Shown here one piece after another: positions 21,144 through 63,489 of a stretch of 64,000 bases of DNA. The DNA comes from Bugula neritina (taxonomy: Eukaryota; Animalia; Bryozoa). Where the stretch lies: positions 17,266,633 to 17,330,632 of the forward strand of contig OZ037769.1 of NCBI GenBank assembly GCA_964035545.1, written 5' to 3'. Position 1 is the first letter of the stretch, and each line of letters starts with the position of its first letter. The translations under genes were made by a program, and so were the position numbers. The notes beneath the pieces were generated by a model. It saw nothing but the letters and a program-made list of their open reading frames with translations, did not search any database and was not told where the DNA came from.

Positions 21144-21416
21144 AATCTTATATCCACATAGAATTTCTAAATAGAAGAGTGTTGCAGGGGCGCACTGAAA
21201 TGCGATAGTCAAACCCAACAATGCCCTAATTTATCTGACATTCCTAAAATACCTATTGCACCAACAGTTTTTTGAGATTACATATTTTATTGTACCAACA
21301 GTCTTATGAGATTACTTATTTTCTTAGTCTAGATTTTAAATACCTTCCCCTAACTCTCAACTGGTCAAAACCCTAAGGCTAAGATTGTTTACATGTGCTG
21401 GAGTGAAGGAAAACAA

Positions 21417-24040: not shown

Positions 24041-24127
24041 ACACCCCAAGTACACTGAAGTGTGTGATGAGAGCTAGGAACTCACCGGTGGACTCTATTG
24101 GCAGCGTCAGCTTGACCTCTACAGACA

Positions 24128-36766: not shown

Positions 36767-38421
36767 TCTGTCAGGTGTTACAGAATGTACACAACAGGAA
36801 ATGGCTTCTTAATCTCTATAACTAGATAAACTATAGCCACTATGGATACTTTGTCTCTGTTTACATTCTATATCTTGTCAACACTGCAAGCTATTTGTGT
36901 TGTAATCTCTCCACTGCATTGATCTCTATGCCAGCTACAGCATGTTGATATTTGAAACTAGAAGCAGACGTCATGTGCAGACGAACATCGACCCACTCAC
37001 TGCTCACAGCAACTACTCAGTCCTTCTCTCTATTGATTAGTGACTTGCACTGCAGTCACTGATAGTGGCACACAATGAGCACATTGTACCTCTGTGTAGC
37101 CCTAGGTTCTAGCACATACAAGGCTGTGTGTAAGGAGTGGTGCAGCTACCACCCCTAACTCCTGTTGGTTAGAAGTAGAACTCAGTGCTTGTACATAATT
37201 AGCCATGTATTATATCATAAAGAGCTGCTAATGGAGTGTTTGTAACTATTAGCTGGAATTAACTGTGCAGTGATTATTTGTGGGGGTATTGCCATATGCC
37301 CCTATCTTTATTGGCACAGAAAGTACACAGTCTATTTTAAATCTGATGTAAAAATTAGGCCAATAATTTAATAGTTTATAAAAAGAGGAGGAAACTGTGT
37401 ATATAACACATGATGTAATACTAAACAATGTCATACTTTATAGCACAATGTTATCCATTATAATGCATAATATATTATGTTATAAAAAATATATTATACC
37501 CAACATAAAGCACGATAAATTATGTAATGTTTTATACTATACTATACTATAATATACACTATAAAGCCTGGATAATTCAAAACTGCATCCTTTCAAATAA
37601 ACCGAAAGCTATAGAAACTAAATAACTTTGTGTATCTTGTTCTACCTTCTTAATGAAGCTTTGTTAGATAGTATTTTTACTTTGATTTTTATTCTATTAC
37701 GCTTCAAAAACTGTATATTTTTAGGCACTTTTGGTCACTATAGCATGGTGTCATGCACAATACATTATGTTATATAAAATATATTATACCCAACATCTTA
37801 AATTGGTCTCTTAATTGACTTTATTAAATTTTATTTTTACCTTGACTTTTATTTTATTATGCTGCAAAGCTGTATATTTGTGGGCACTTTTGGTCACTAT
37901 AGCATGATGTCAGAACCCTCAAACCCCTTCTCTAGTTGAGCTAACTCTGAAGAGAATATAGTGCTAGAATCTTAAGAAAATGGTGCCTTGGAAACTTTTT
38001 GATTTTTTTAGCAAAAACACAAACAGGTTTGTGCTCTGATATATTCAAGCATTTTAGCAATTGTTCCTCTTGTTTACATAAGTAAAGCTGAGTTAGTAAG
38101 TTTGTCTTTGTTACATATTCTTTGTTACATCTTTACTCTCTCTACTTGGAATTTGTAATGAAGTAGCCATTTAAGTCTAGACTTGTTATTTATAAGTTAC
38201 TTGAAGCTGTAACTTCTAGTTGTAACAGCTCTCATGGCTATTTGACTAAACATTCATTTTGACTCACTTCTAGTAAACTTAGTAAAGTATATGTGTTAAT
38301 ACTGCTATTTATTTCTAAATCCTGGAGTGGATGAAAAGACCACAGGATAATCTTATTTGTTCATTGTCAATTCACCAGCTCATGTAATAGAAAGAATCAC
38401 AGCTCTACCTCAGTGTGCTCT

Positions 38422-39373
38422 ATTAACTTTAACCCTTTGCTCTAGTACAACCAAACTTATATTGTTACAGCTTAGCCATGAATTAGTAAATATTTTAAGG
38501 AGAAGTACCTAAACCAGCCATAGAGCACATTCATTAAAGATCCAAGGCTACAATTTGAAGAAGGGGCTAACCCTACCCATACTGCCTAGCTTCTACCTCA
38601 CTATTCAAGTTTATTGTTATACCCTAATGACTACAGTCTTTGTTATTGACTAAACAAACATGTTAAACTAGATATCAGGGATTATATTACAAACTGGGCA
38701 GCCATAACTTGTGTAATATAACTATAAATCTTTCCATGTATGTATTCATCTATTCTTTATAACTACCACCATATTATTAGCTAACAAAGCTTTTTATTAC
38801 AAGCTATTATTCACATTTCTCACTAGTAGACTACAAACTTTCCTGTTGGGTGATTGCCAAATGTTATTTATAAACTAGAACCAATACCAAAGAGCTGTAG
38901 TGAATATGATTATTCATAACAGCCAATACCAAAGAGCGTACCATTTCGTAACTCATCACGTGATCATGTAACAACTATTACTTGCAGTAGCAATACTAAC
39001 TAGCACGCACTAAGAGGGAAGTCACTGTATCTTCCTAGTCAGAGTGGGAAGATAATCAAGTCGGTTTATGGAGGATATTATGTAACATATGCAGATGGTG
39101 AAGAGTATCTCAACTCACCTGCTGTCTTCCTTTGAATTCACTGTAAGTATAATTTATTTAATATATAAATGTAAATGACTAAAGGTTAGTTTCCTTTGGT
39201 ACATATGAACCTGTAGGGGGTAAAATTAAGTCGAATATGAAGACACCTACAAAGTGGGTTAACCTCAAATTGAAAACAACTCAACTCCTCTGTGAGTACA
39301 TGAAACACAAAACACAGAACAATACTTTGGTGTTATAGAATCTCTCAGCAAACTAGCTATATCTAACATTACA
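38422..39373 (+). repeat. Copy 1 of a ~950-bp duplicated block (upstream region and putative 5' non-coding exon of the Roco-caspase gene)
   Basis: Colinear with 55657-56587 from attaactttaaccctttgctctagtac to atctaacattaca, including the donor-like ttcact|gtaagta. Confidence 0.85.
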
Positions 39374-39563
39374 GGTCTTGTTTGGTTTTACATTCTTTCT
39401 AAATCGCTGGCTCATGGTATCAGTGGAGATATATTACAGAAATTGCAAATGCTAGCTGTAGTTTGTATAAATGTTTCACCATGTTTAGAGGAATAAACTA
39501 AATAAAATGGTTGTTACAGATGAGAATAAAAATGTGATTATAGCTGTAACCAGAGACTACAGG

Positions 39564-42500
39564 ATGGGTCAACGTAAATCTGTCCCTCAACCTCCACGTC
39601 AGTCTGTGATAAGTTAGTAAACCATATGAATACAAATACTGCAACTAGTGACTATAACAGAAATTATATAATTTTATGTTCTGAAAATAAGGTGCAGTAG
39701 CAGAGAAACTGAGATAGCCTAAGTTCTTTAAGTTTTCTAACAAATTTTGAGTTAAGGTGCAGGTAAAAATTATCATCAAAACATAACTTCTTTGCTACAT
39801 TTCTGACCTAGAAACACAGGTATTTTTCACTTGTTTCATTATGGTACACCTACCTCTGTTTTGACCACAGCTGAGTATATTACATTGCTTGTGTTTATTA
39901 TATAATGTTATATACTGAGTATAATATATATATAGCTATTATATACTGACTTATATTATACTATTCTATAACTATTAGACTAACCTATGTCATATTATAT
40001 TATATAGTATATTATATTAAATTATATTATAGCCTACTATATGACCAATTATAATATATCATAACGCATGCTGCGTACAATACCAAAGTTAATTACTTCA
40101 ATACTGTATAGAGTGTTGAGACATATACTCTGTTATTTGATATCAATGTTATTATTCATATAGTGGTGAATATTTTGTAGAAAGGTACAAGGTGTGGTTC
40201 AACATATCCAGTATAGATGGAGCTGATTATAAGTGGATGAAGAATGATACTACACACTACACTATAGAAGAGATCAAGAAGAGAACTAGACATCATACAG
40301 TGACTCATGTTACACTGGAGGATGACATCCCTCCAAATATGAACACACTGTTTCCTCATCTCACACACCTGAGTGTAGAAGGAGTAAATAGTAGTGCTGA
40401 CTGGACCAGGTATACTAGTGTTATAATATAAAACTATATATTCAATAAGTGACATATTATCTTGTAGTAGAATGTGGAGTAATCTCCCCTCACAATAACA
40501 CTACCTTTAGTAACAACTGTTGTATTATTTACCTGGTTTATTGTATTTCTATTTATTATTCAATGTAATGTGAGTGAATCTCATTCAAACTAATATGTGA
40601 TAATTATATAGAGTTGAATACTGTCACATACCTGTGTGTTATGTTACAGCATATCTTCGCTGAAGAATCTTGAGGTATTGGATATATCAGATAATTACCT
40701 ATCTGAAGGTCAACCTGACAATATATTCACATCCTTACTATCATTGAGAGAGTTGAACATGAGGAACTGTGGACTACCAACTCTACCAAACAGGTGTGTA
40801 TTATATTATAGTGTAGAATGGTACTGCAATAATCATAAGTTATAAATATACTATAAATAGGTAGGAGTTGTATAGTATTTTTTGATATACAATATTTCAC
40901 ACCTGCATAATATGCTACAGCATATCTTCACTGAAGAATCTTGAGGTATTGGATATATCGTGGAGTAAGCTATCTGAAGGTCTACCTGACAATATATTCA
41001 CATCCTTACTATCATTGAGAAAGTTGAACATGAGTTACTGTAACCTACCAACTCTACCAAACAGGTGTGTATTATATTATATTGTATAATGGTACTGCAA
41101 TAAGCATAAGTTATAAATATATTATAGATATGATTAGGTAGAGGTTGTATGGTATTTTTAATATACAGCATTTCACACCTGTATGTTATGTTACAGCATA
41201 TCTTCACTGAAGAATCTTGAGGTATTGGATATATCAGATAATAACCTATATGAAGGTCTACCTGACAATATATTCACATCCTTACTATCATTGAGAGAGT
41301 TGGACATGAGTTACTGTAACCTACCAACTCTACCAAACAGGTGTGTATTATATTATATTGTATAATGGTACTGCAATAAGCATAAGTTATAAATATATTA
41401 TAGATATGATTAGGTAGAGGTTGTATGGTATTTTTAATATACAGCATTTCACACCTGTATGTTATGTTACAGCATATCTTCACTGAAGAATCTTGAGGTA
41501 TTGGATATATCAGATAATAACCTATATGAAGGTCTACCTGACAATTTATTCACATCCTTACTATCATTGAGAGAGTTGAACATGAGGGACTGTAAACTAC
41601 CAACTCTACCAAACAGGTGTGTATTATATTATAGTGTAGAATGGTACTGTAATAAGTATAAATTATAAATATAATATAGATATGATTAGGTAGAAGTGTA
41701 TGGTATTTTTTGATATACAACATTTTACACCTGTGTGTTATGTTACAGCATATCTTCACTGAAGAATCTTGAGGTATTGTATATATCAGTGAATAACCTA
41801 TCTGAAGGTCTACCTGACAATATATTCACATCCTTACTATCATTGAGAGAGTTGAACATGAGTCACTGTGAACTACCAACTCTACCAAACAGGTGTGTAT
41901 TAAATTATAGTGTAGAATGGTACTGCAATAATCATAAGTTATAAATATACTATAAATAGGTAGGAGTTGTATAGTATTTTTTGATATACAATATTTCACA
42001 CCTGCGTAATATGCTACAGCATATCTTCACTGAAGAATCTTGAGGTATTGTATATATCATGGAATAAGCTATCTGAAGGTCTACCTGACAATATATTCAC
42101 ATCCTTACTATCATTGAGAGAGTTGTACATGAGTTGGTGTAAACTACCAACTCTACCAAACAGGTGTGTATTATATTATACATTATGAAGTTGTCTGCAC
42201 TATCTTTATTGAGTCAACTAGACTCTGTGTATACGACACGTCATAAGACAACTACTCTATTCAATCAGATATACTCAGATAGATATGGTATGACAACTTC
42301 TCACTTATTACTCTAATAAATTTATTGACAAATAAATTGTTTTGCTACAAAATGAAAGTATATTGAGACTTAGCTGAGAGTTGTATATTGTAACTTGTAT
42401 AATTTTTAAGGAAGTTAATGAATAGAAGACAACTAACAAAATATTCATTTTTAGCTGTACTTAATTATGAAACTCTCACTGATTTATTATACTGAGATAT

Positions 42501-45500
42501 ATTATAATGTTATACTGAGATATAATAGTATACTATACTGAGATATATTATAATACTATACTGAGATATATTATAATATTATACTGAGATATATTATATT
42601 ACTATACTGAGATATATTATAATACTATACTGAGATATATTATAATATTATACTGAGATATATTATAATATTATACTGAGATATATTATAATATTATACT
42701 GAGATATATTATAATGCTATACTGAGATATATTATAATATTATACTGAGATATATTACAATATTATACTGAGAAATATTATAATACTATACTGAGATATA
42801 TATAATGTTATACTGAGATATATTGTAATGTTATACTAAGATATATTACAATATTATACTGAGATATATTATAATACTATACTGAGATATAATATAATGT
42901 TATACTGAGATATAATATAATACTATACTGAGATATATTATAATGTTATACTGAGATATATTGTAATGTTATACTAAGATATATTACAATATTATACTGA
43001 GATATATTATAATACTATACTGAGATATATTATAGTGTTATACTGAGATATATTATAATATTATACTGAGATATAATATAATATTATACTGAGATATATT
43101 ATAATATTATACTGAGATATATTATAATATTATACTGAGATATATTATAATATTATACTGAGATATATTATAATATTATACTGAGATATATTATAATGTT
43201 ATACTGAGATATATTATAATATTATACTGAGATATATTATAATGTTATACTGAGATATATTATAATACTATACTGAGTTATATTATAATGTTATGCTGAG
43301 ATATTATATAATTTATCTGTATGATATAATATATGTTAAAGCATATCTTCACTGAAGAATCTTGAGGTATTGGATATATCAATGAATAACCTATCTGAAG
43401 GTCTACCTGAAAATATATTCACATCCTTACTATCATTGAGAAGGTTGAACATGGCGGGCTGTGAACTACCAACTCTACCAAACAGGTGTGTATTATATTA
43501 TACATTACGAAGTTGTCTGCACTATCTTTATTGAGTCAACTAGACTCTGTGTATACGACACGTCATAATAAGACAACTACTCTATTCTATCAGATATACT
43601 CAGATAGAAATGGTATGACAACTTCTCGCATATTATTCTAAAAAATTCATTGACAATTAAATTGTTTTGCTACAAAATGAACTCTATTGAGACTTATCTG
43701 AGAGTTGTATATTGTAACGTGTAATTTTTAGAGAAGCTAATGAATATCGAAGACAACTAACAAAATATTCATTTTTAATTATGAAACTCTCACAGATTTA
43801 TTATACTGAGATATATTATAATATTATACTGAGATATATTATAATATTATACTGCGACATATATTATAATATTATACTGAGATATATTATAATATTATAC
43901 TGAGATATATTATAATATTATACTGAGATATATTATAATATTATACTGAGATATATTATAATGTTATACTGAGATATATTACAATGTTATACTGAGATAT
44001 ATTATAATGTTATACTGAGATATATTATAATATTATACTGAGATATATTATAATATTATACTGCGACATATATTATAATATTATACTGAGATATATTATA
44101 ATATTATACTGAGATATATTATAATACTATACTGAGATATATTATAATACTATACTGAGATATATTATAATGTTATACTGAGATATATTATAATATTATA
44201 CTGAGATATATTATAATATTATACTGAGATATAATATAATATTCTACTGAGATATATTATAATATTATACTGAGATATATTATAATGCTATACTGAGATA
44301 TATTATAATATTATACTGAGATATATTACAATATTATACTGAGAAATATTATAATACTATACTGAGATATATATAATGTTATACTGAGATATATTGTAAT
44401 GTTATACTAAGATATATTACAATATTATACTGAGATATATTATAATACTATACTGAGATATAATATAATGTTATACTGAGATATAATATAATACTATACT
44501 GAGATATATTATAATGTTATACTGAGATATATTGTAATGTTATACTAAGATATATTACAATATTATACTGAGATATATTATAATACTATACTGAGATATA
44601 TTATAGTGTTATACTGAGATATATTATAATATTATACTGAGATATAATATAATATTATACTGAGATATATTATAATATTATACTGAGATATATTATAATA
44701 TTATACTGAGATATATTATAATATTATACTGAGATATATTATAGTGTTATACTGAAATATATTATAATATTATACTGAGATATAATATAATATTATACTG
44801 AGATATATTATAATATTATACTGAGATATATTATAATATTATACTGAGATATATTATAATATTATACTGAGATATATTATAATATTATACTGAGATATAT
44901 TATAATGTTATACTGAGATATATTATAATATTATACTGAGATATATTATAATGTTATACTGAGATATATTATAATACTATACTGAGATATATTATAATGT
45001 TATACTGAGATATAATATAATATTATACTGAGATATATTATAATGTTATACTGAGATATATTATAATACTATACTGAGTTATATTATAATGTTATGCTGA
45101 GATATTATATAATTTATCTGTATGATATAATATATGTTATAGCATATCTTCACTGAAGAATCTTGAGGTATTGAATATATCATATAATAACCTATCTGAA
45201 GGTCTACCTGAAAATATATTCACATCCTTACTATCATTGAGAAGGTTGAACATGGCGGGCTGTGAACTACCAACTCTACCAAACAGGTGTGTATTATATT
45301 ATACATTACGAAGTTGTCTGCACTATCTTTATTGAGTCAACTAGACTCTGTGTATACGACACGTCATAATAAGACAACTACTCTATTCTATCAGATGTAC
45401 TCAGATAGAAATGGTATGACAACTTCTCGCATATTATTCTAAAAAATTCATTGACAATTAAATTGTTTTGCTACAAAATGAACTCTATTGAGACTTATCT

Positions 45501-48500
45501 GAGAGTTGTATATTGTAACGTGTAATTTTTAGAGAAGCTAATGAATATCGAAGACAACTAACAAAATATTCATTTTTAATTATGAAACTCTCACAGATTT
45601 ATTATACTGAGATATATTATAATATTATACTGAGATATATTATAATATTATACTGCGACATATATTATAATATTATACTGAGATATATTATAATATTATA
45701 CTGAGATATATTATAATATTATACTGAGATATATTATAATATTATACTGAGATATATTATAATGTTATACTGAGATATATTACAATGTTATACTGAGATA
45801 TATTATAATATTATACTGAGATATATTATAATACTATACTGAGATATATTATAATACTATACTGAGATATATTATAATGTTATACTGAGATATATTATAA
45901 TATTATACTGAGATATATTATAATATTATACTGAGATATAATATAATATTATACTGAGATATATTATAATATTATACTGAGATATATTATAATGCTATAC
46001 TGAGATATATTATAATATTATACTGAGATATATTACAATATTATACTGAGAAATATTATAATACTATACTGAGATATATATAATGTTATACTGAGATATA
46101 TTGTAATGTTATACTAAGATATATTACAATATTATACTGAGATATATTATAATACTATACTGAGATATAATATAATGTTATACTGAGATATAATATAATA
46201 CTATACTGAGATATATTATAATGTTATACTGAGATATATTGTAATGTTATACTAAGATATATTACAATATTATACTGAGATATATTATAATACTATACTG
46301 AGATATATTATAGTGTTATACTGAGATATATTATAATATTATACTGAGATATAATATAATATTATACTGAGATATATTATAATATTATACTGAGATATAT
46401 TATAATATTATACTGAGATATATTATAATATTATACTGAGATATATTATAGTGTTATACTGAGATATATTATAATATTATACTGAGATATAATATAATAT
46501 TATACTGAGATATATTATAATATTATACTGAGATATATTATAATATTATACTGAGATATATTATAATATTATACTGAGATATATTATAATATTATACTGA
46601 GATATATTATAATGTTATACTGAGATATATTATAATATTATACTGAGATATATTATAATGTTATACTGAGATATATTATAATACTATACTGAGATATATT
46701 ATAATGTTATACTGAGATATAATATAATATTATACTGAGATATATTATAATGTTATACTGAGATATATTATAATACTATACTGAGTTATATTATAATGTT
46801 ATGCTGAGATATTATATAATTTATCTGTATGATATAATATATGTTATAGCATATCTTCACTGAAGAATCTTGAGGTATTGAATATATCATATAATAACCT
46901 ATCTGAAGGTCTACCTGACAATATATTCACATCCTTACTATCATTGAGAGAGTTGTACATGGAGAGATGTAAACTACCAACTCTACCAAACAGGTGTGTA
47001 TTATATTATACATTATGAAGTTGTCTGCACTATCTTTATTGAGTCAACTAGACTCTGTGTATACGACAAGTCATAATACAACTACTCTATTCTATCAGAT
47101 ATACTCAGATAGAAATGGTATGACAACTTCTCACTTATTGCTCTAATAAATTTATTGATAATTAGATTGTTTTGCTACGAAATGAAATCTATTGAGACTT
47201 AGCTGAGAGTTGTATATTGTAACGTGTAATTTTTAGAGAAGTTGATGAATAGAAGACAACTAACAAAATTATCATTTTCAGCTGTAATTGTGAAATTCTT
47301 ACTGATTGTTACACTGAGTTATAATATAGAAATTATACTGAGATATATTATAATATTTACTGAGATATATTATAATATTATACTGAGATATAATGTAATG
47401 TTATACTGAGATATATTATAATGTTATACTGAGATATATTATAATATTATACTGAGATATATTATAATATTATACTGAGATATATTATAATATTATACTG
47501 AGATATAATATAATACTATACTGAGATATAATGGTAGTCAATCAACTGTTACCTAGTGATGCATTGTATCATTTACCTGCTCTTTTGCATCAAATAACTG
47601 GGAGGATAACTCCTAAAATATCTATAAATTTTATACAATACTTTGCACAATCTTACATATATGTATTATAATTATTAATTGTATTATGGAACTCCAATGT
47701 TTATTTTTGTGCAAACCCCATTTTTGTAACCTCAAATATATTATTTTATTTTTATTAGCATGCAGAGTCTACAGAAGTTAGAGAAACTGAACATATCAAG
47801 GAACAAGTCCACCAGTTTACCATCTATTGTGTACACACTGAGCAGTCTGCAAGAACTGAATATATGTAATAATAAATCCCTGACATCATTAGATCCTGAG
47901 ATACTACAGCTAACTCAACTTCATACACTGGAGGTCTGGGGTTGTGATGCTCTCACATCTCCTCCACTAGAAGTATGTAAGAGAGGACTAGATGCTCTGA
48001 GACAATACTACACAGACTTGGCTAAAGGTGCTGGTAAAAGTCTACCATTTGCTACTGTAGCTGTGCTGGGTAATACGATGGCCGGGAAGACCAGTCTAAT
48101 CAGAACATTACAGAGTGCTGACAGAAAGAGAGTTCTGACCAACAGAGGGCCAGATGCTGTGAGAGATGAGACAACAAAGGTGTTTAATGTTGAAGAGGTG
48201 GAGGTGGATGGTACAGTACTCCGTGTCATTGATATGGGAGGCCAGGAGGTCTACCATATCACCTATCAACTGACACTGAGACAGAACTGTATTCCAGTCA
48301 TAGTAGTCAACATGGAGCAGTATGATAAGATTTCAAGTGAATCAACCCACAGAGAAGCTGTTAGAAGATTAGCCTTTGATTACATGTCCCACCTCTACCT
48401 GGCTAACCCAACTCTGGGTCCACCAAAACTTATCTTCACCCATGAAGATAAGTTTCAACGTACGGAATTTCAGAAGCTTCGAAAAACCTTTCTAGAAACT

Positions 48501-51500
48501 TCCAATCAACTGTGTGAGGAGATGATTAGAGAAGAGAAAGCGTTGGGTGGAGAATTTGCTCGAATCAAATATTTCAGTGAATCAACTGATGGCGTCTTTC
48601 TTGGTGAGGACATTTTTGAGCTGGGAAAGGATGACAAGTATGAAGTGTTTGACCTGATCAAAGAGTCTCTTCTTCAAAGCAGTCAAAATTTTGTGAAACC
48701 TTTACCTCTGGTCTGGGAGGAAGTGAATGAAAAAGTTCTGTCTATTCCCTCTGTGTACAGCACCTTTGATGAGACACTGAAATACATACAAACAGAACTT
48801 CAACACATTGAGTCAAGTCAGCTGGACATAATCCTCACATACATGCATGACTGCGGCAAAGTCTTGTGGTATAAAGATATCAGCTCTCTCCGGCCATACG
48901 TATTCCACAAGATTTCAGAAGTCACCAAACTCCTCTGTGTCTTGTATCATCATGATCCTAAGATCTGGCAGAGTAGAGTTGACCAGTTCCAGCCATACTA
49001 TTCGCAGACTGAACTACGTGTCGAAAAGCAGGACTTTGAGAAATCCGTCAATGATTTCACTGACACTGGTTTGATGATGCCGTCCCTTCTTTTTTATTTC
49101 GTTGAAAAAGAGACATCATTCAGTAGCTCTAAGGACGTTGAAGTTGCCGTCTGCTTACTCCAGACGTTTCGTTTGCTGCACGGTCCAATACATAGCGAGT
49201 CTGAAGAGCCATGGTTCATTGTACCTCAGTTTGCTAAAAACTACTACAGCACCTCCTATTCCTCACCCAAAGACATACGTCTTCAGGTGGAGACACAGTT
49301 CAATGGTCTAGCCCTGCCACAATATGTCTACCACCAGATGACGGTCGGTTTGTTGGAATCGTTCCCAGATGAGTTTGCTGTGATGGAAGTGAAGAGAAAC
49401 GGAGCCAATGTCTATCAAGATGAAATCCACACACAGCTGGTACATGATTGCAAATCTAGAAAAGTGTCACTTCACGTGTCATCCAATGCTGCCAACATCA
49501 GCAAAGTGTGGGAGAGACTCATCACCACCAACAACAACATCCTTAGACATGTTCTAGAAACCTGGACAGCAAGTAGAGCAGTCACTACATGCTACTGTGC
49601 TCACTGCCTTCTGCTAGGACTTCCTTGTCCTAAGAAAGTACTCCATCCTCCATGGTGTCTTCGCTCCTTGAAACATCCCACACCAAATCCCAGACTGTGT
49701 AGTGGATCTTCAACAACTCTGTGTGGCAGTGAGGAGATACCGAGTGCTTTTCTCTATCCATGTATGTTTGGTTACATTATGGTGCAGTGTGTGTAATAAC
49801 TTTTATTTCTTTCTAATTTACCACATTATTTAGATATGAACTGAGTCAATCCTCCCCATTCCTTGGTATAATTGGGGTAAGAAAAATATAGTGAGTTGGA
49901 ATTATTTATTATATTTTTAAGTATTTCAACTTTTCAGGTGAAACATTGTCTAAGAAAGAAGCTGATAAGTTGGAGAAGTTTGGGAAGGAACTGAATCTTC
50001 GAGGAGCTCAAAGAAGAGTAACTAATTCTGGTAAACACGGAGTTACCAGTTTGTGCAAGCGTGTGTTCTTTTTATGTTAATCAAGTTCAACTTGAGCCGT
50101 GAATGATTCTACTGCGTTTTATTTCATACCATGTCAACAGTTTCTTAGGAATGTGTATCATTTAAAAATTGAACTTTATTTTGCAAGTTAATGAAAGCGT
50201 TTAACTTTACATGGTGAAGCAATGAACGTATATTACTGAGTTACAGCTCAGTACTACTTTGCCGATCTTTGTATTTCTTACTTATTCTGTGATGTGATAT
50301 GAGTCTGTACTTTATAGCTGCTAACAGTAGCCAATCAGATCTCCTGACCTCCGCGATAACAGCCAATGACGATCTCAGTGATCTCTCTGATGACGATGAG
50401 AATCTGTACCCTGATAGAGAGGAAGTTGAAAATATGAAGTTTATAAGACTCAGACTGAATCCCACCAGTAACCCAAAGATAAGACAGCTGTTCTCAAACA
50501 CTGACAAGGTGATCACTTCTAATGGCTATGTCCTTTATTCTTGCCAGTTGTTTAGTTCAGCAGTGACACGTATTTCTCTGTTACATTCAGGTGTTTACTA
50601 TGACTAGAAAAAGAGGAAGAGCTCTGATAATAAACAACATGAACTTTGAGAAGAGACCAGATTTGTGTAGGACAGGTTCAGATGTGGATGTAGAGAATTT
50701 GTCTGCCCTGTTGAAAACTCTCAAGTTTGATGTTGTGACACACGCAGACCTGAAAGCTGAGGTACGTTTTGTTGCTGTTTACTTATCAAGTTAAAAACCT
50801 ACTTCTCTGTTAGTATACAATATCTATATTTATACAGAATACGTTGCAAGGGTTTACAGGTCTTACAGTTTTCATGGACTTTAAATAAAAATTCAATTTA
50901 ACATAAGACTTCCTCCTTCCCAATTTCATTATTTTACTTCCTGTTGTAGGAGATGCTGTCTGCTGTGAAATCTGAGGTGAAAAAAGAGGAACACGAAGAT
51001 CTGGGATGTCATGTGTTGGTTATCATGACTCATGGAGGGCTGAACAACCACATCTTGGGTACAGACCTGAAACGAGTCAAATTAACAGATGTGTATGACC
51101 TTCTGACCCCTTTGAACTTCCCTGGAATGGCTGGCAAACCAAAGGTTGTTATACTGGAAGTCTGTAGTGGAGGTAATCAATTTATAAAACATTTCTGGTC
51201 AGTGCAGAGTTGTGTTCTCTTGAATGTTAAGTATTTGGTAGAGTGTGTTAACTTACAACTAATTTCACAATTATGTAGAATAATTCTTACATATTTAACC
51301 TTGTTTGTGTTCATTATATGAAGTGAATATAAATGTTTTTATATCGCTCACAGAGAGAAGTGACTATGGCCAAAGAGGTATAGACAGATTTGATATCGGA
51401 GAATCACAGAAGGAGGGGGAGAGTATCTCACCTCCACTTGCTAAAGTTCCAGGAGACAAAAATGCTGAGGCTATGAATAGACTGAACTATGATGACCTGC

Positions 51501-52675
51501 TAGTAGTGAAATCTAGCATGGAGTGTAAGTAAGACACATGTAATGGAGTACAAGTTACTGTATCCATGATATTATACTGTATAACTAGTCAACTAGTTGT
51601 ATTTCCAATAGTTGAATATTTTATATGATTGATTCTACTTGTAGCATTCATATCAAAAAGTCACCCTGAGTGTGGATCTCTAATGGTTAGAGCTCTTGTA
51701 TCCTCCATGTATAAACATGCCTGTCACCATGACCTCTACACTATATTCAAACAGGTTAATGTGTTGCACTTTGTTACACTTATAAACATAGAGATCTGAT
51801 GAAATTGAAAATGTCACAAATTAATGTTAGCTGTTGGCAAACTAATAATATTAGGAGTAAATATTTATAATTATTTTACAGTTTGTTATAGAGTATTTAC
51901 AGTTTCCTTTTGTTATAGTGTAGGTATTGTTATAGTGTAGGTATTGTTATAGTGAAGGTATTGTTATAGTGTAGGTATTGTTATAGTGAAGGTATTGTTA
52001 TAGTGAAGGTATTGTTATAGTGAAGGTATTGTTATAGTGTAGGTATTGTTATAGTGTAGGTATTGTTATAGTGTAGGTATTGTTATAGTGTAGGTATTGT
52101 TATAGTGAAGGTATTGTTATAGAGAAGGTATTGTTATAGTGTAGGTATTGTTATAGTGTAGGTATTGTTATAGTGTAGGTATTGTTATAGTGTAGGTATT
52201 GTTATAGTGTAGATATTGTTATAGTGTAGGTATTGTTATAGTGTAGGTATTGTTACAGTTAGTGTAGGTATTGTTATAGTGAAAGTATTGTTACAGTGTA
52301 GGTATTGTTATAGTGTAGGTATTGTTATAGTGAAGGTATTGTTATAGTGAAGGTATTGTTACAGTGTAGGTATTGTTATAGTGTAGGTATTGTTATAGTC
52401 TAGGTATTGTTATAGTGTAGGTATTGTTATAGTGTAGGTATTGTTATAGTGTAGGTATTGGTTATTTAGAATAATATGGTATAAAATAGCAATAAGATTT
52501 CACTGTTTACTTGCTTAACATTCTTCAGGTACAGACTAAAGTGAGAAAACTGTGTTTAGATAAAAATCTAGAGAGTGGAGGACAGTTGGTTGTAGTCTGG
52601 GATACTCTCACTCATATGAGAAAACTTTACCTGTTTCCTGGGTTTAATGGCAACCAAAGAGAAGATGACTCTTAG
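39564..52675 (+). CDS. LRR-Roc-COR-caspase fusion protein (MFHAS1-like Roco fused to a caspase-2/9-like peptidase C14), about 1560 aa, 19 coding exons
   Basis: Exons 39564-39612, 40181-40409, nine 144-bp LRR exons, 47759-49761, 49938-50030, 50318-50508, 50591-50761, 50950-51172, 51354-51524, 51645-51754 and 52529-52675 total 4683 nt. All introns are GT-AG and phase-compatible, with no stops. Roc motifs GNTMAGKTS, DMGGQEVY and THEDK; COR-like PLVW, YMHDCGKVLW and FIVP; caspase motifs RGRALIINN, RTGSDVD, MTHG, GKPKVVILEVCSG and KLYLFPG. Confidence 0.85.
40650..46993 (+). repeat. Tandem array of nine 144-bp phase-2/2 LRR cassette exons (48 aa, two LRRs each)
   Basis: Exons 40650-40793, 40921-41064, 41197-41340, 41473-41616, 41749-41892, 42020-42163, 43342-43485, 45143-45286 and 46850-46993. 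Each runs ag|catatcttc...ccaaacag|gtgtgt. Consensus SISSLKNLEVLxISxNxLxEGLPDNIFTSLLSLRxLxMxxCxLPTLPN. Confidence 0.95.
42488..47530. repeat. 23-bp minisatellite arrays (ttatactgagatatattataata)n inside the last four LRR-cassette introns
   Basis: Arrays at about 42488-43300, 43800-45105, 45600-46815 and 47335-47530, each preceded by the same ~310-bp intron segment. Confidence 0.93.
51911..52460. repeat. 17-bp minisatellite in the last intron of the caspase region
   Basis: Unit tgttatagtgtaggtat. Confidence 0.92.
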
Positions 52676-55656: not shown

Positions 55657-56587
55657 ATTAACTTTAACCCTTTGCTCTAGTACAAACAAACTTCTATTGT
55701 TACAGCTTAGCCATGAATTAGTTAGTATTTTATTGAAAAGCACCTAAACCACCCATAGAGCACATTCACTAGAGATCCAAGGCCACAACTTGAAGAAGGG
55801 ACTAACCCTATTCATGCTGTCTAGCTTCTACCTCACTATTCAAGTTTATTGATATACTCTAATAACTACAGTCTTTGTTATTGACTAGACAAGCTAAATT
55901 AAGAAATATCAGGGATTATATTACAAACTGGGCAGCCATAACTTGGGTAATATAACCAAAGCTCTTTCCATGTATGTATTCATCTATTCTTTATAACTAC
56001 CATCATATTATTAGCTAACAAAGCTTTTTATTACAAGCTATTATTCACATTTCTCACTAGTAGACTACAAACTTTCCTATTGGTTGATTGCCAAATCTCA
56101 TCAATAAACTAGAATCAATACCAAAGAGTATACACAGCTTGAGTAAATATGATTATTCATAACAGCCAATACCAAAGTGCATATAGTATTTCAACAACAT
56201 ATCACTTGACCGTGTAACAACTATTACTTGCAGTAACAATACTAACTAGCACACACTAAGATGGAAGTCACTGGTCCCTTCCTAGTCATATTAAAAAGAT
56301 AATCAAGTTGATTTATGGAGGATATGACGTAACATATGCAGATGGTGAAGAGTATCTCAACTCACCTGCTGACTTCATTTGAATTCACTGTAAGTAAATT
56401 TTGTTTATTATATAAATGTATATGAACCTGTAAAGGGTAAAATTGAGTTGAATATGAAGACACCTACGAAGTGAAAGTGGGTTAACCTCAAAATGAAAAC
56501 ATTATTCGTGTGCCCGAGGCACAAAACATTTATTAATACCTCAATATTATAAAATCTCTCAGTACAACTACGTCATCTAACATTACA
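55657..56587 (+). repeat. Copy 2 of the Roco-caspase 5' block, ending at the Gypsy 5' LTR
   Basis: Diverged but colinear copy of 38422-39373. Confidence 0.85.
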
Positions 56588-56939
56588 TATTGTGGTGGCT
56601 TGCGGGGCTACCAGCAGCGTAATTATGGAGAAATGTTATTTCCCCCACGAGTGCAGCACGGGGTCATTGAGATGACCCGGAACAGCAGACAACCAATCGG
56701 CGTGACTAACAGTTTTGGTAGTCGTAGTTTCCCGCTGTTTAGTTAGTAGAGTTTAGACTGGTGAACTGTATAGACCGTATCAATTAGCTGAATGTATTTG
56801 TGTTACTATAGTTTTTGTGATGTATTCTTGTGTGTAAAATATATTAGTGTTAACTCGAATTATCCTGGCGAAGTTTCTTTAGCATAATAAATAGACTCTC
56901 GTGATTGCACACCAACCCAAATTCTGGAAATTATAACAG

Positions 56940-56957
56940 TGGTGGCAGCGGTGGGAT
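56940..56957 (+). promoter_or_regulatory. Primer-binding site complementary to the tRNA-Leu 3' end
   Basis: tggtggcagcggtgggat is the complement of ...atcccaccgctgccacca and lies 1 nt after the 5' LTR. Confidence 0.85.
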
Positions 56958-56971
56958 AGTGCACATCCAAG

Positions 56972-57903
56972 ATGGAGACTGAAGATGCTGGAACGCAACC
57001 ACAGCCGGTAGAAGGTGAGCGTAGAGATGATGTTATTCCTGTGAATCGTGTTGTAGAAGAGCGAAGAGTTCCTCGGGAACTGAACGAAGACCTCTGCCGG
57101 TTAAAGGCACCCACCTTCACTGGCGAAGGCGAAGTGGAACAATTCATTCAAGAGTTTAGCGACGTGATGGACGTTGCCCAGTAGCCACCTAGGGTGGCCC
57201 TGCTGAAGCTCAGAATGTCATTGATGGATAAGGCCAAGCCCTATGGGTTAGGGGCAGACATCGATAGTATCTTTGCTTCTCCACGAGCCCGCTTCGGCAT
57301 CTCTGCCATAGATGCCCGGGCTTGTCTACAAAGGCTGCGGCGTGATCCCACACCCCGCTACAGGAACATGCCACCACGATGATGAAGCTGGCGCAGATTG
57401 CGTATAGCGATCTGCCTCAAGCTAACCGTGAGAGGTGCACCTTTGACGCCTTTGTGCAATCTGTCAACGACTTGGGACTCCACCATCAATTTCTAGCTAG
57501 GGGAGTTACCACAGTCGAAGACGCTCTGGCGGAAGGAGAAGCTTATCTTCTGGCAAACCAGATGCATAGAAATCGCGGGAACTCCCACCAGGTGGAGATA
57601 GAGCCCACGGACACGGCAGCCGATCGGGAGGCAGAGCCCTCCGCGACCGCTGTCGTGGGACAGTTAACTGCCGCATCGAAGGTCGCCCAACTGACTGACA
57701 TGTTGGCTAAACTGGTAGCAGCACTGACACATCAAACCCCAGTAGGTACCGTCTATGAGCCTCCGCAGCCACCGGGGGAAACAGTCAGTTTTTGCTGGGA
57801 ATGTGGAAACCAAGGACATTTCCGCAGATACTGGCCTCTCCTTGCTCCGGGGTTAAACTACCGTGGCCCGCAGATGTTCCCGCCTCCTGCGGGCCGACGA
57901 TGA
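56972..57903 (+). pseudogene. gag: Gypsy gag, disrupted
   Basis: APTFTGEGEVEQFIQEF and a degenerate zinc knuckle CWECGNQGHFRRYW; in-frame stop near 57182 and a frameshift near 57355. Confidence 0.85.
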
Positions 57904-58159
57904 ATCCCCCAGGGAAGAGGAAACGTAGGTCACTCAGACGGGTACTGCGTGCTAACAACCAGAAGGGGCGACAGCCACGGCAAACAGGTAAGGGGCTCCG
58001 CCCCGCTGTTACCTTCTCTATGCCACTCCACAACCGATTCAACGGGCCCAAGAATCAGAAAGGGAACCAATACAGGCAACTGGAAACTTACCCTCCCTAT
58101 CTCCGAGGACACCCTACCACCGTCCCAAACGACCACCCTCGCGACCTAAAGCGAGGGAG

Positions 58160-61100
58160 GTGCTCCCTGCGAGAGTAAGGCACGAAGAGAGAGTACAGGT
58201 ACAGCCTCATGGGAACAGCTATTTCTTACCCGGCAAAATAAAGGGTAAAGCTGTTACTTTCCTGCTTGATTTGGGCTGTACCACGAACCTCATAAGTCGC
58301 CAACTCTTCGATACCCTCAGCACTAGGGTCAGGGGCGAGATGGAACCGTACGAGGGAGAGTATGGCACCCTGGCTGACGGGTCGTGCATTCCCTTCTATG
58401 GTATAATTAAGCTGACCGGACGCGTCTGAGATCAAACGATCCAAGAGACGTTTATCGTTAGTCAGCTCAAAGAGGACGCCATCCTCGGGATGCCATTCCT
58501 GAAACGGCACGGATGTCACATTGACTTCAGTAAGTCTGCAATGGTGATGTCCGGGCGAGAACTCACCTGTGTCGACAAGTTCTGTCGCCCCTTAGTGGGA
58601 GGCGTGCAGGTGGTACGAAACTGTACTGTACCAGGCCGCTCCCGAGCTACTATCCACTGTAGAGTGAACAATAACCAGATCTCTGGACTCGGAGTAGTTG
58701 AAAGCGTGCACGAAAGAATCCAACTCGCCAGCAGTTTGAACCAACTGACTGCGCGAGGAGAGATCTTAGTGCAGTGCGTAAACCCTTTTACCGAGTCCAT
58801 TAAGCTACCAGCTGGATCTATGCTGGGCCGGTTCCACTCTGTCCAAGAGGAGGATGTGGGCCCGTCGCTGGGAGACGCAACAGAAGAGCACCCTCGACGC
58901 CCTCAGAAGGGGCGGGGGACTGTCCCAACACACATCAGGGAGTTATACGAGACAGCTTGTGGTGGCTGTGCAAGCAACGAGGAACGCCAGGCTATGGCGA
59001 AGTTGCTACGCGACTACGGTGATGTGTTCAGCAGCGGAGATCACGACGTGGGACTGACTGGAGCTGTCAGACACGAGATACCGCTGACTGCAGGGACAGT
59101 CCCTATTCGGCAACCCACCCGCAGGTTGGGGCCGGAGAAGGAGAAGGAGGTCAGCTGACAAATCCGGGATCTTCTGGACTGCGGCTTTATCGAGCCAGCC
59201 CACAGTGCGTGGAGCTCGCCGGTCGTGTTGGTCTGGAAGAAAGACGGAAGTTGGCGGTTCTGTGTGGACTACCGCAAGCTCAATAGCGTGACCATACAGG
59301 ACGCCTACCCTCTACTTCGTATTGATGAATCACTGGACGCCCTAGCCGGCAGCAAGTACTTCAGTACATTAGACTTGTTGAGGGGTTACTGGCAGGTTCC
59401 TCTGAGTCCCGACGCCTAGGAGAAGGCGGCGTTTAACACACGGTACGGACTGTGGAAGTGGAAGGTGCTGCCCTTCGAGTTAAGCTCCGCACCGGCCACC
59501 TTTCAGAGGCTGATGGAGCAAGTCCTCAGCGGACTCCACTGGAAAACACTGCTGATCTACCTCGATGACGTCATCGTGATCTCCCTGGACTTCGAGACAC
59601 ACGTCAGCCGTCTGCGGGAGGTTTTCAAAAGACTCAGAGGTGCCGGTCTGAAGCTCAAACCTTCCAAGTGTGCTCTTTTGCAGCTGGAGATCAAGTACCT
59701 GGGGCACGTTGTCGGTCGAAACGGCGTGGCAACGGATCCCGAAAAGGTGCGGGCGATAGAGGACTGGGTCACTCCCCAAGATTTGACCGGACTCCGGGCT
59801 TTCTTGGGTCTGGTGGGGTATTACAGGCAATACATACCAGACTTTGCGGGGATAGAACAGCCGTTAAACCGGCTCACCGCAAAGGGAGTGACGTGGCAGT
59901 GGACCCCGGTCGTACAACGGGCGTTCGACCGCCTCAAGGGTTGTCTACTTACGGCACCCATCTTGGCCTACCTAGACCCCACTCTGGAGTACATCCTTGA
60001 CACAGACGCTAGTGACCAGAATGTTGGCGCTGTGCTGTCTCAAGTGCAGGAAGGCCGAGAAGTAGTGGTAGCGTACTAAAGCAAGTCTCTCTCACCCACT
60101 GAACGAAATTACTGCACTACCCGCAAGGAGTTGCTGGCAGTAATCAAGTCAGTGAAGCACTTCAGACCACACCTGTATGGCAGGAACTTCCGGCTGCGTA
60201 CGGATCATGCCTCTCTGATTTGGTTGTGCAAGAAAGCTGAGCCGTCCAGTCAGGTCGCCCGGTGGCTCGAAATCCTAGCTGAGTTCTCCTACCGGATCGA
60301 ACACTGGCCGGGTAAGAGGCACAGGAATGCGGATGGGTTGAGCCAGCGACGTGATGGAGGTTGTAAACAGTGTCTCAACATTGAGAGGAGGGATGGAGGT
60401 CCCCCACGATGTGAGTTAGAGACACTGGCTCACCACGGAGCACAGTTTGACTGGGACCAGGGTCAACTCCAGCAGACGGTTGACGAGTCCCCGGAGGTTG
60501 TACTAAACCTTCGCGCCAACCCTGTTTTGGCCGATAATGTCCAGGAGCTGAAGAATCTTCAGGAAGAGCTGCCTGGAGTAGTGGCAGACATATATCGGGC
60601 CAAAAAGGAAAGGCGACGACCCAGCGAGGAACAACTGCGGCAGGGATGCGCCGAGTTCCGGCTATTCTGCCAACGTTGGGACTCGCTGAGGATTGGGCCA
60701 GATGGTCTGCTGACCATTTCTTTGGCCGCCAACGGCAGACACCCGGAGAGGAAGAAAGTGGTCTGCCCCACTGCCATACGCCGTGAGTTAATTTGGGACA
60801 CTCATAAACAGGCTCACGCAGGAGTCAAGAGAGTGATCTCCAAATTGCAACTCCGGTGGTATTGGCCCAAGATGGGGCGTGATGTCCGACTCAGAGTCAA
60901 ACAGTGTAAAATCTGCCAGGCCAGCAAGCATGTCCGTCTCCCTGGTGAAGCGGGACGGCGAAGGTTATATGCTGAAAGGCCGTGGCAAGTAGTAACTGTC
61001 GACCTGGTCGGACCCATGCCCCTAACCCCCAGAGGCAATAGTTGGATCTTAGCATTAACCGACCACTTTACGAGGTGGGCGGATGCTCCGGCGATCCCAG

Positions 61101-61981
61101 ATGCGTCAGCTCCGACAGTGGCCAGGGTGCTAGACCAACATGTATTCTGTCACTTTGGCCTCTTCGAACAGATACACTTTGACCAAGGCGTCCAGTTCCA
61201 GTCTCAACTGATGAGCGACCTTTGTCGCCTCTGGGGAGTAAATCAGAGCAGGACCACTCCTTACCATCCCCAAGGCAACGAGGTGGTGGAGCGCAATAAC
61301 CGGATGCTAAGTGATGCGCTCCGGAGTCTACTCCTCGGACACAGTCAGGAGGAATGGGACACGGTGTTGCAGCAAGTCATGCGCGCATACCGTAGCACCC
61401 CACACACCAGTACTGGTGAGACCCCAAACCTCCTGATGCTCGGGAGGGAGACTCGTGTCCCAGACCATCTTACCTACCACATTCCAGAACAAGACAACTC
61501 AGTTCACGAGTATGCCAGTGAACTAGTGGAACGGATGAAGGTCGCACACGAAATGCTGCGAGAGAAGCAGTGGCAGGTGCGGCGCGAAGATTCCGAGAAA
61601 CCACCTCTCTATCAGACAGGAGATTGGGTGTGGATGGTCAATTACCGTAGGCATTGCGGACAGGCGGCTAAGTTACAGCCTAAGTTCGTGGGACCCTACG
61701 TGATAGTCGAGGCTATGCCCAACCATACCTACAAGATCGAGCGCTCAGGACAAGTGTCCATCCCAAATGAGGCTCGCTTGAAGCCGTATTGGGCTAGCCC
61801 AGACGCAGTGAGAGAAGCCCCCCCCCATTGTTGGAACCCAGGAGGCAGACGACAATGCGTGGGCGACGGCGGCATGGATCCGAGTATGAAGTGGTCATTC
61901 CGCAGGAAGAAGATTTGGTACGAGACGAGCGACCGCTTCTACCCACAGAAGTGCGTCCGCCGCCTCCTATACCAAGTCTGA
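58160..61981 (+). pseudogene. pol: Gypsy pol (protease-RT-RNase H-integrase), multiple stops
   Basis: FLLDLGCTT (protease); WRFCVDYRKLN and YLDDVIV (RT); DTDASD and RTDHASL (RNase H); HxxxHxG..CKIC, DLVGP, TTPYHPQGN and GPY (integrase). Stops at about 58427, 59156, 59417 and 60077. Confidence 0.93.
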
Positions 61982-62614
61982 TGCCATCACTTCCAGAAAC
62001 CGAACCGGTTCCGAAAGTGCAAACCCTCACGGAGGGAGGGGCTCCATCCAGAGAACAGGAAAAAGTAACCACTACCGGTGAATTAGAAGCGCCACCAGAG
62101 GCCCCTACTAGCCGGTGAGTGCGCCACCTCCCCTAGAGTGGGGACAACGTACGAGGCAACCCCCATCATATTCAAAAGATTTCGTATGTGACTGCATGCA
62201 AAGCGGCGCGTATGAAAGTCTAGAGGGGAACCATACGAGAAAAGTATCGAGCAATTGTAGGAATTGTCAGCACCACGGGAATATCAACTTTTGCATCGGC
62301 GGATTTAGAAATAAAATTCATTCGCCGAGTGTGCAAAGTCCTAGTCACGCACCCCAACCATGTTGCTCGATCTTTTCTCACGCTGATGCAGTCAAGAGCA
62401 GACGTGCTTCTAGTCACTAGTACAAACCATTCACAAACATTCAGTACGTCATACAATACCGGATCGTGGGGTGAGTTAGCTATGTTCCTGATATGGAAAC
62501 TAGATTGCATCACTCAGCTCTGACTCGACTGAGTCAATCGAGCTGGAGATAGGCTAGTGAACTGTAGTGGTAGGAACTCAGATTGACTTAGAGATTTCAC
62601 GATCTCACTGCAGT

Positions 62615-63489
62615 ATGTGTTCTCTTCCAACTATTCACTACCGTAAATCTCTGCGAGTGTTAACCGAACGGGAAGTTGTCAGGCTGTTTAAGGCCGACAA
62701 CACTACAGTGTATGTTACTAATGCTGTTGAAACTCTTTCAGGTTCCACTCGGCCCGCTACAACCAGGGTACGGGATAGAGCACCTCCCGCTCCGCACCAC
62801 GAGGAGAATGTCAATGACAGACTACCCGGGCCACTGCGCCGCCGCTGGCGGTGGGTGTCGCCAGAGACGGAGAGGAAAATAGAGGCTGCATGGGGACCCA
62901 AAGAGAGTACACAGTGCCAACTCTGTTATGAGGATAGCCCGTCTCACCGCGCACTAAGCTTACACGTGGACGCCCACTACCTCCTGACATTCTGCCCCTG
63001 TGGACACCACGACATTTATCCATACCCCGTTATTAGACATCGAGCAGCTGGATGCTTTCCGGGGGAAAACTACGTGGTGGATGCTGATCTATACCCGAAA
63101 TTCTTAGTACTAATACGGCCTTTTGTGAGGAAAGCGATGCTGTTGGCCGTTTTGACTGCCGGGTTCCAGCATGTGATAAAATACGCTCGACAACAATCCT
63201 CGATGGTATCGGACAGACCCAGATTACATACACCCCTGAAAAAATCACCTACTCGGATGCGGAAGAGGAAGTCACACCTCCCCCTCGTAAAGTCCCGACC
63301 CCATCTCCAGACCGTACTCGTCTTGCTACTGTAGAGGAGCGGCTCCTTCGGCGACAGGCTGAATTTACTCAGTTAGCACCAGACCTACTCAGTACCACAA
63401 CAGGACTTTATCAATTAAAGGGCTCCGTGGGCCAGATTAAACGGAAATTACGTGCCCGTCGAGCCAAACATCGGCTCTTCAAACCCTGA
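62615..63489 (+). pseudogene. Extra Cys/His-rich ORF between the integrase and the 3' LTR, frameshifted near its 3' end
   Basis: CQLC..LSLHVDAH..CPCGH..HRAAGC, then a frameshifted coiled-coil-like tail ending at tga 63489. Confidence 0.6.

Follow-up and report, generated by a model that had tools for sequence, protein, structure and literature searches.

The strand residues of leucine-rich repeats (LRRs) form the binding surface of lamprey variable lymphocyte receptors (VLRs) and of plant NLRs. In the brown alga Ectocarpus, shuffled and hypervariable LRR exons have been described within ROCO genes (PMC3341825, PMC11378527), and in bacteria, LRR-ROC-COR proteins that are predicted to be counter-invader systems are linked to at least 24 types of effector, caspases included (PMC8195603). 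A Roc-COR-CHAT protease of Runella cleaves and activates a gasdermin (bioRxiv 2021.06.07.447441), and the LRR-ROC-COR-TIR proteins of sea anemones represent a related animal architecture with another effector (PMC5094078). The present analysis concerns an LRR-ROC-COR-caspase gene of the bryozoan Bugula neritina, located at positions 39564 to 52675 on the + strand of a 64,000-nucleotide stretch of contig OZ037769.1 (termed the window, to which coordinates refer unless otherwise indicated). A first-pass annotation, made from the letters of this DNA, had drawn attention to nine LRR exons of this gene and had correctly cited the Ectocarpus precedent. Searches of the literature, with incomplete coverage, found no description of a bryozoan or animal ROCO-caspase family; hence, the bryozoan receptor-protease family is apparently undescribed, with clear precedents in algae and bacteria.

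Nine LRR cassette exons and their variable codons

The nine cassette exons lie on the + strand at 40650-40793, 40921-41064, 41197-41340, 41473-41616, 41749-41892, 42020-42163, 43342-43485, 45143-45286 and 46850-46993 (exons 1 to 9, respectively). Each consists of 144 nt, is bounded by AG and GT, has phase 2 at both ends and contains 48 codons encoding two LRRs (repeats A and B) without stops, with pairwise differences among the nine amounting to 4 to 15 of 144 nt. The exons were located where the first-pass annotation had placed them, and its 18 quoted peptide strings for repeats A and B were all exact. The repeat A strand of exon 4 is the same as that of exon 3, while exon 8 is a mosaic, combining the repeat A strand of exon 9, which is also identical to that of cassettes in two other genes, with the repeat B strand of exon 7.

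Variation among the nine cassettes was confined to 25 columns, and 18 of these fell within just eight codons (11, 14, 16, 34, 36, 38, 39 and 41), corresponding to strand positions x5, x8 and x10 of repeat A and x3, x5, x7, x8 and x10 of repeat B. In standard LRR geometry, x3, x5, x7, x8 and x10 face or edge the concave surface. Position x2 of both repeats and positions x3 and x7 of repeat A were invariant. The other variable columns comprised two silent TCG/TCA changes, one change altering the structural Asn of repeat A (in exon 2) and four off-strand replacements, at codons 18, 21, 23 and 25. The earlier proposal that the exons vary only at the concave face on an invariant scaffold was, therefore, borne out for most columns and for the two silent changes that it had cited but was too strict with respect to the repeat A Asn and the off-strand replacements. 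A random spread of variable sites was contradicted: the 12 codons considered a priori to be exposed on the strands held 86% of the nonsynonymous differences, a proportion matched by none of 100,000 random sets of 12 codons.

Selection was examined in a sample of 58 cassettes from 13 genes, comprising the nine window exons and 49 cassettes from 12 other genes. All 58 were intact, with no indels or stops, and all 58 combinations of exposed residues were distinct. A purpose-written site model comparing M1a with M2a was run with and without multi-base changes and on three different trees. M2a was preferred in both sets, with likelihood ratio test values of 58 to 82 for the nine window exons and 208 to 360 for the 49 others, and the positively selected class comprised ∼17% of codons in the window exons. 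The selected codons were the same in both sets, namely 11, 14, (16), 34, 36, 38, 39 and 41, with one tree losing codons 11 and 16. Tree-free ratios of the proportion of nonsynonymous differences at exposed codons to that of synonymous differences (pN/pS) were 12.0 (bootstrap interval, 5.8 to 35) for the nine exons and 3.7 (2.1 to 6.0) for the 49 paralogous cassettes, in which off-strand pN was 0.041 versus a pS of 0.071. In the ROC-COR exon, a pN/pS of ∼0.3 was indicative of purifying selection. Over 132 nt, introns 2 and 3, which flank exon 3, showed no differences; introns 1 and 5 differed by 1.6% and other intron pairs by 8 to 13%; the exons adjoining these near-identical introns differed at 5 to 9 bases, nearly all of them replacements. 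Both the site model and the tree-free count gave values above 1 at the strand codons, again so in the cassettes of 12 other genes, in support of the diversifying selection that had been proposed. These sequence comparisons support diversification of a predicted surface by selection; the binding of foreign ligands by the concave face would be a further step.

An AlphaFold model of the LRR arm of a Watersipora homolog (pLDDT of 97) was a regular solenoid matching the LRR domains of SHOC2 and of Leptospira and Chlorobium Roco proteins, and its short strands were centered on the equivalent of x5, at the equivalents of codons 10 to 12 and 35 to 37.

Linkage between sites was close to zero among cassettes at distances beyond 3 nt (mean r2 of ∼0.02), and 282 of 496 site pairs failed the four-gamete test, a result to which recurrent mutation under selection can contribute. 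Repeat A distances were barely correlated with repeat B distances (r of 0.15), and identical multi-base codon alleles were shared across contigs by as many as 8 or more genes. Silent divergence across genes was lower for cassettes (pS of 0.07) than for ROC-COR exons (0.10 to 0.30), which is, therefore, a sign of exchange between genes. At the level of sequence, more than 100 cassettes thus form a single pool subject to fine-scale recombination or gene conversion. This exchange keeps the scaffold uniform and reshuffles the codon alleles, selection maintains diversity at the eight strand codons, and the symmetric exons are gained and lost in frame, with 2 to 9 cassettes per gene read. Neither this reshuffling nor the exchange of caspase ends between paralogs described below had been noticed in the first-pass annotation.

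An origin of the pattern without selection, due to mutation hot spots, adenine mutagenesis of the kind associated with diversity-generating retroelements (DGRs) or conversion sparing a few sites, was also considered. Several of the variable codons are AAC or AAT based, codon alleles are shared among genes and omega is raised by recombination, all of which are in keeping with such an origin. However, silent sites in structural codons 10, 12, 35 and 40, which are interleaved with the variable codons, were at the background level (pS of 0 to 0.05), and four-fold A positions elsewhere in the cassettes varied by only 0 to 7.5%. Changes of G and at third positions were as frequent as changes of A, and the cassettes of Watersipora are variable at equivalent positions. 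The background silent sites and the unmutated adenines elsewhere led to the rejection of a regional hot spot and of a DGR-like process targeting adenines, and an absence of selection is very improbable overall. An artefact of sequencing or assembly is hardly credible. A 23-bp AT-rich minisatellite (42485-46848) occupies introns 6 to 8 and recurs at 47309-47530, and the nearly identical exon-intron units 7 and 8 lie inside this long array, such that the assembly could contain one copy too many or too few. Errors, however, would ignore codon position, and the presence of 58 cassettes without indels or stops and of multi-base codon alleles recurring on different contigs contradicts the sequencing-error explanation. 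The introns following exons 7 and 8 agree at 289 of their first 290 nt, and the minisatellite traveled with the exon-intron unit as it was duplicated.

Gene architecture, ROC-COR region and caspase

Joining of the exons of the gene at 39564-52675 produced a frame of 19 exons and 1,555 codons with a single, terminal stop and canonical splice sites throughout. The joined translation served for this frame check, while database searches and structure prediction used single exons or database proteins. The inferred first coding exon (39564-39597) starts with MGQRKS, an N-myristoylation-type sequence, followed by a Pro-rich stretch whose length varies among paralogs; the start context and phase 1 donor are common to paralogs L011, L013, L015 and L019. 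An MGxxxS start is common to four paralogs and to two models from Watersipora; two further paralogs (C1 genes without Gly-2) begin differently. On the basis of this consensus start, the protein may be N-myristoylated. The first coding exons of L013, L019, L021 and L023 also contain a tandem, Pro-rich segment that differs in length among them. Exon 2 (40181-40409; phase 1 to 2), assigned by frame continuity, encodes the N-terminal cap region 5′ of the cassettes; an acceptor at 40163 was rejected in favor of one at 40180, as demanded by the phase 1 first exon. The cassettes are followed by a large exon of 2,003 nt (47759-49761) encoding the final LRRs and their cap, the ROC GTPase and COR, as identified by Pfam matches and Watersipora homologs, then by two acidic linker exons (49938-50030 and 50318-50508) and five caspase exons (50591-50761, 50950-51172, 51354-51524, 51645-51754 and 52529-52675), the last of which contains the stop. 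The caspase exons were assigned by Pfam, by joints or loose ends in RNA-like contigs and by paralog exons. No transmembrane stretch was present in the joined 1,555-residue model, the top 19-residue hydropathy of 1.05 being below the level of a membrane helix, and no hydrophobic leader or surface anchor was found in the complete germline frame.

RNA-like contigs from four runs, whose RNA nature is a guess, were compared with 47560-51850 at a likeness of 90%. Joints were detected for 49761>49938, 50030>50318, 50508>50591, 51172>51354 and 51524>51645, the first three of which support the linker exons. Loose ends matched exon 50591-50761 ahead of 50950, the last exon past 51754 and a cassette end 5′ of the ROC exon. 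Introns had zero or low coverage in all runs but one, which contained some DNA. The open 19-exon frame, these joints and the one-chain Watersipora gene models described below support the proposal that the cassettes are wired to a caspase.

The central region was identified as a ROCO GTPase by a match of ROC to PF08477 (E of 4e-7, above the cut-off) and by the P-loop GNTMAGKT and the DMGG and THED motifs. Directly after ROC, COR-A scored an E of 0.019, which alone is below the cut-off, while full-length homologs at 35 to 42% identity carry PF16095, identifying the region as COR. By analogy with the described Roco proteins (PMC4104024), GTP binding and hydrolysis and a COR-mediated dimer switch would be expected. 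The C-terminal exons encode a caspase (C14A) fold, with a match to Peptidase_C14 (PF00656; E of 1e-9) and a His-Gly and Cys dyad. The catalytic His (MTHGG) and Cys (LEVCSG) are retained, and the nearest solved structures are those of CED-3 and caspase-8. The S1 pocket departs from the Asp-specific form: in caspase numbering, Arg179 is kept, the equivalent of Gln283 is Glu in the CED-3 alignment and the equivalent of Arg341 is Ser, the register of the last having been set by eye against the following Gly-Ser.

All 29 ROC-COR exons with 78 to 100% identity to that of the window have a downstream caspase exon on the same strand, with positions paired by hand. Fifteen of these caspases are of the window type (88 to 100% identical), 13 are of a second type (43 to 46% identical to the window type) and one is of a third. 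The second type, read in L024 (G000:C1:34004192; 12 similar genes), has the canonical motif QACSG and retains Arg at position 341, while in the third (L029:5898-6119; G000:C1:32582822) a Tyr replaces the catalytic Cys, as in cFLIP, an inactive caspase. An apparent absence of caspases from two paralogs in a DNA search was rejected when a protein search found a different caspase type in its place. The eight window-type genes read all retain the His and Cys; this type has Glu at Gln283, and its 341 position is occupied by Ser, Arg, Val or Ile. The surroundings of Arg341 (51645-51680 in the window, and in paralogs L018, L020, L022 and L027 and the loose ends of RNA-like contigs) were observed to vary within a domain that is otherwise 85 to 98% identical, hinting that substrate specificity may be diversifying too. 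As far as the donor, the DNA of the L024 and L029 ROC exons has 88% identity to the corresponding exon of the window, and both exons nest among the window-type genes, while ROC exons with only 57 to 62% identity carry caspases 86% identical to that of the window. These discordant identities show that sensor, switch and effector differ in their histories, due to exchange of 3′ ends or conversion of 5′ parts.

In the B. neritina genome (216 Mb), related ROC-COR exons number at least 75; an 18-base word of the cassettes matched 139 times, and there are 135 caspase exons and 81 relatives of the cap exon (exon 2). These parts are clustered on several contigs, with genes on at least seven contigs, and ∼13 of the genes were read. 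The next paralog (L011/L012), 1.8 kb past the end of the window, has two cassettes and a ROC exon with 94% identity. In a nine-cassette paralog (L025:138-582; G000:C1:33968437-33968881), alignment of the ROC exon shows an excess of four bases close to the 5′ end, a possible frameshift. The nearest named relatives are the MFHAS1-like proteins of Watersipora subatra (33 to 38% identical), whose automatically named RefSeq models include single chains combining LRRs, ROC-COR and a caspase. Watersipora cassettes are 141-nt, phase 2 exons with two LRRs and vary at equivalent positions. A homolog search with a Watersipora ROC-COR-caspase returned solely Watersipora-named and unnamed proteins, which is no proof of absence elsewhere. 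An exon-by-exon search of the genome, which provides lower bounds, detected NACHT once, as a short match (C6:312551), and did not detect NB-ARC; NLR-type receptors may be scarce here, against at least 75 ROCO genes. Three gasdermin-family matches exceeded the Pfam cut-off (G000:C2:4312189, C2:2048552 and C2:4286293), and these gasdermin-like genes are candidate caspase substrates.

Elsewhere in the window, the − strand carries a gene for a protein with a PTB/PID domain (13538-14596) and a single-exon M12B/ADAMTS-like metalloprotease with a hydrophobic C-terminal segment (19329-21221). A 12-bp minisatellite of 2.6 kb with a GC skew of 0.95 is present at 21416-24041, and many unrelated intronic minisatellites occur across the window. 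An element of ∼950 bp occurs twice, upstream of the ROCO-caspase gene (38400-39400) and beside a retrotransposon (55660-56590), with 83% identity between the copies, and is also found near some paralogs. The retrotransposon (56900-63400) is GC rich and Ty3/Gypsy-like, with gag-like, protease, reverse transcriptase/RNase H and integrase reading frames recognizable by motif and containing stops and frame breaks.

Proposed mechanism and rival explanations

We favor, with moderate confidence, the interpretation that this gene encodes a germline-diversified, intracellular, one-chain LRR-ROC-COR-caspase receptor that activates its own caspase. In this view, the sensor arm belongs to a cytosolic protein that is probably tethered to the membrane by a lipid, and the nine exons are germline modules of that arm that can replace one another. 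The concave LRR face may bind variable foreign or altered-self molecules, and ligand binding would shift the ROC-COR monomer/dimer switch (cf. PMC4104024), thereby pairing two caspase domains by induced proximity, as in initiator caspases. The dimerized protease could then trigger cell death or an immune signal, with gasdermin-like proteins as possible substrates. Overall, such a protein would resemble an NLR and inflammasome in one polypeptide, with a Roco GTPase replacing the STAND ATPase. The bacterial ROC-COR-effector systems, the gasdermin matches in this genome and the apparent scarcity of NACHT and NB-ARC support a receptor-protease, and the at least 75 genes are strong candidates for bryozoan intracellular immune receptors.

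Several points weigh against this interpretation. The roles in ligand binding, expression response, GTPase activity, proteolysis and cell death are predictions from sequence, and solvent exposure was assigned from standard LRR geometry. The omega values of 11 to 68 are inflated by recombination and, hence, the tree-free ratios are the safer figures. The non-canonical S1 pocket indicates that the predicted caspase may be weak or may not cut after Asp. Furthermore, at 90% likeness the RNA-like joints may derive from paralogs, and they would establish the structure of the family better than expression of the gene at 39564-52675.

The same diversification could be driven not by pathogens but by another selective agent, either allorecognition between colonies or the control of symbiotic bacteria. 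The host is colonial, allo-incompatibility in bryozoans has been linked to cell death (PMC8195603) and the multigene diversity is extreme. The sequence is also present in symbiont metagenomes from 2016 and in biofilm samples. However, known allorecognition determinants of invertebrates are surface proteins, such as the Hydractinia Alr proteins of the immunoglobulin superfamily, while the ROCO-caspase protein has no signal or transmembrane segment and its genes are spread over at least seven contigs instead of a single histocompatibility locus, making this explanation fairly unlikely. A non-lytic signaling or regulatory role, in which altered caspases, together with the paralog that has Tyr for Cys, serve as scaffolds or decoys or cleave with a different specificity and the LRR arm guards host proteins or tracks fast-evolving effectors, would fit the altered window-type S1 pocket, its variable 341 position and the cFLIP-like paralog. 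It is quite unlikely given the retention of His and Cys in every window-type gene read and the canonical residues of the second caspase type. Skipping of cassettes in splicing, or somatic recombination, could diversify the repertoire further in a single individual, which would be compatible with the favored receptor-protease. The shared phase of the cassettes leaves any subset in frame, and alternative splicing of LRR exons has been reported for Ectocarpus ROCOs (PMC11378527), but germline duplication demands exon symmetry equally, the splice sites are strong and nearly identical among cassettes and neither spare or promoterless donor cassettes nor signal sequences were seen at the locus. This possibility is, therefore, doubtful. 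A broader scenario, in which bryozoans have largely replaced NLRs by ROCO-caspases that are modular at both ends, an inactive caspase type included, in combination with cassette skipping or somatic exchange within a colony or with a role in fusion and rejection, is unlikely.

Comparison with known systems

The ROCOs of the brown algae Ectocarpus and Saccharina resemble the bryozoan family in having an LRR-ROC-COR order, an expanded and clustered family, symmetric repeat-unit exons in variable number and positively selected sites on the concave face (PMC3341825, PMC11378527). The algal exons, however, encode one LRR in 72 nt compared with two LRRs in 144 nt here (138 or 141 nt in relatives), and the 2024 survey, which reported alternative splicing of the algal LRR exons, mentions no caspase (PMC11378527). 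As the exon units differ, the likeness is likely to be convergent, and algal proteins were absent among the homologs recovered in searches with the bryozoan ROCO-caspase. Bacterial LRR-AP-GTPase(ROC)-COR-effector proteins likewise have fast-evolving LRRs and an exchangeable C-terminal effector, which can be a caspase, with several paralogs carrying different effectors in one genome (PMC8195603). These are prokaryotic and intron-free, whereas the bryozoan genes have exon cassettes and an animal-type caspase nearest to CED-3 and caspase-8 by sequence. Among animal proteins, MFHAS1/MASL1 shares the LRR-ROC-COR core, and vertebrate MFHAS1 is single-copy, conserved and devoid of a caspase. The Watersipora proteins (XP_067949563.1, XP_067935480.1 and XP_067937032.1) are true relatives, several with a fused caspase; those read carry QACSG, unlike the window type.

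Animal NLRs with their inflammasomes and plant NLRs have in common with this family a cytosolic, variable LRR sensor, a nucleotide switch, an output through caspases or death and clusters subject to birth and death. The bryozoan protein differs in that the central domain is ROC-COR, a Roco GTPase and not a NACHT or NB-ARC ATPase of the STAND class, and in that the effector is C terminal in the same chain, making the design adaptor-free. In lamprey VLRs, the same strand positions of the LRR cassettes are hypervariable. These receptors are located at the cell surface or secreted and are assembled somatically from an incomplete germline gene, whereas the bryozoan gene is complete in the germline and its product, having no leader or anchor, is predicted to be intracellular. 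The adenine-specific variation against a template repeat that characterizes DGRs was not found in the cassettes. The findings point to a large, fast-diversifying, adaptor-free receptor-protease family in a phylum whose immunity is almost unstudied, providing candidate genes through which bryozoans may sense pathogens, control symbionts or recognize other colonies. The protease in the same chain would also report directly on the ROC-COR monomer/dimer switch, which is under debate for LRRK2-type proteins. In its overall design, the family unites the exon-cassette LRR-ROCO arrangement of brown algae with the LRR-ROC-COR-caspase arrangement of bacteria.

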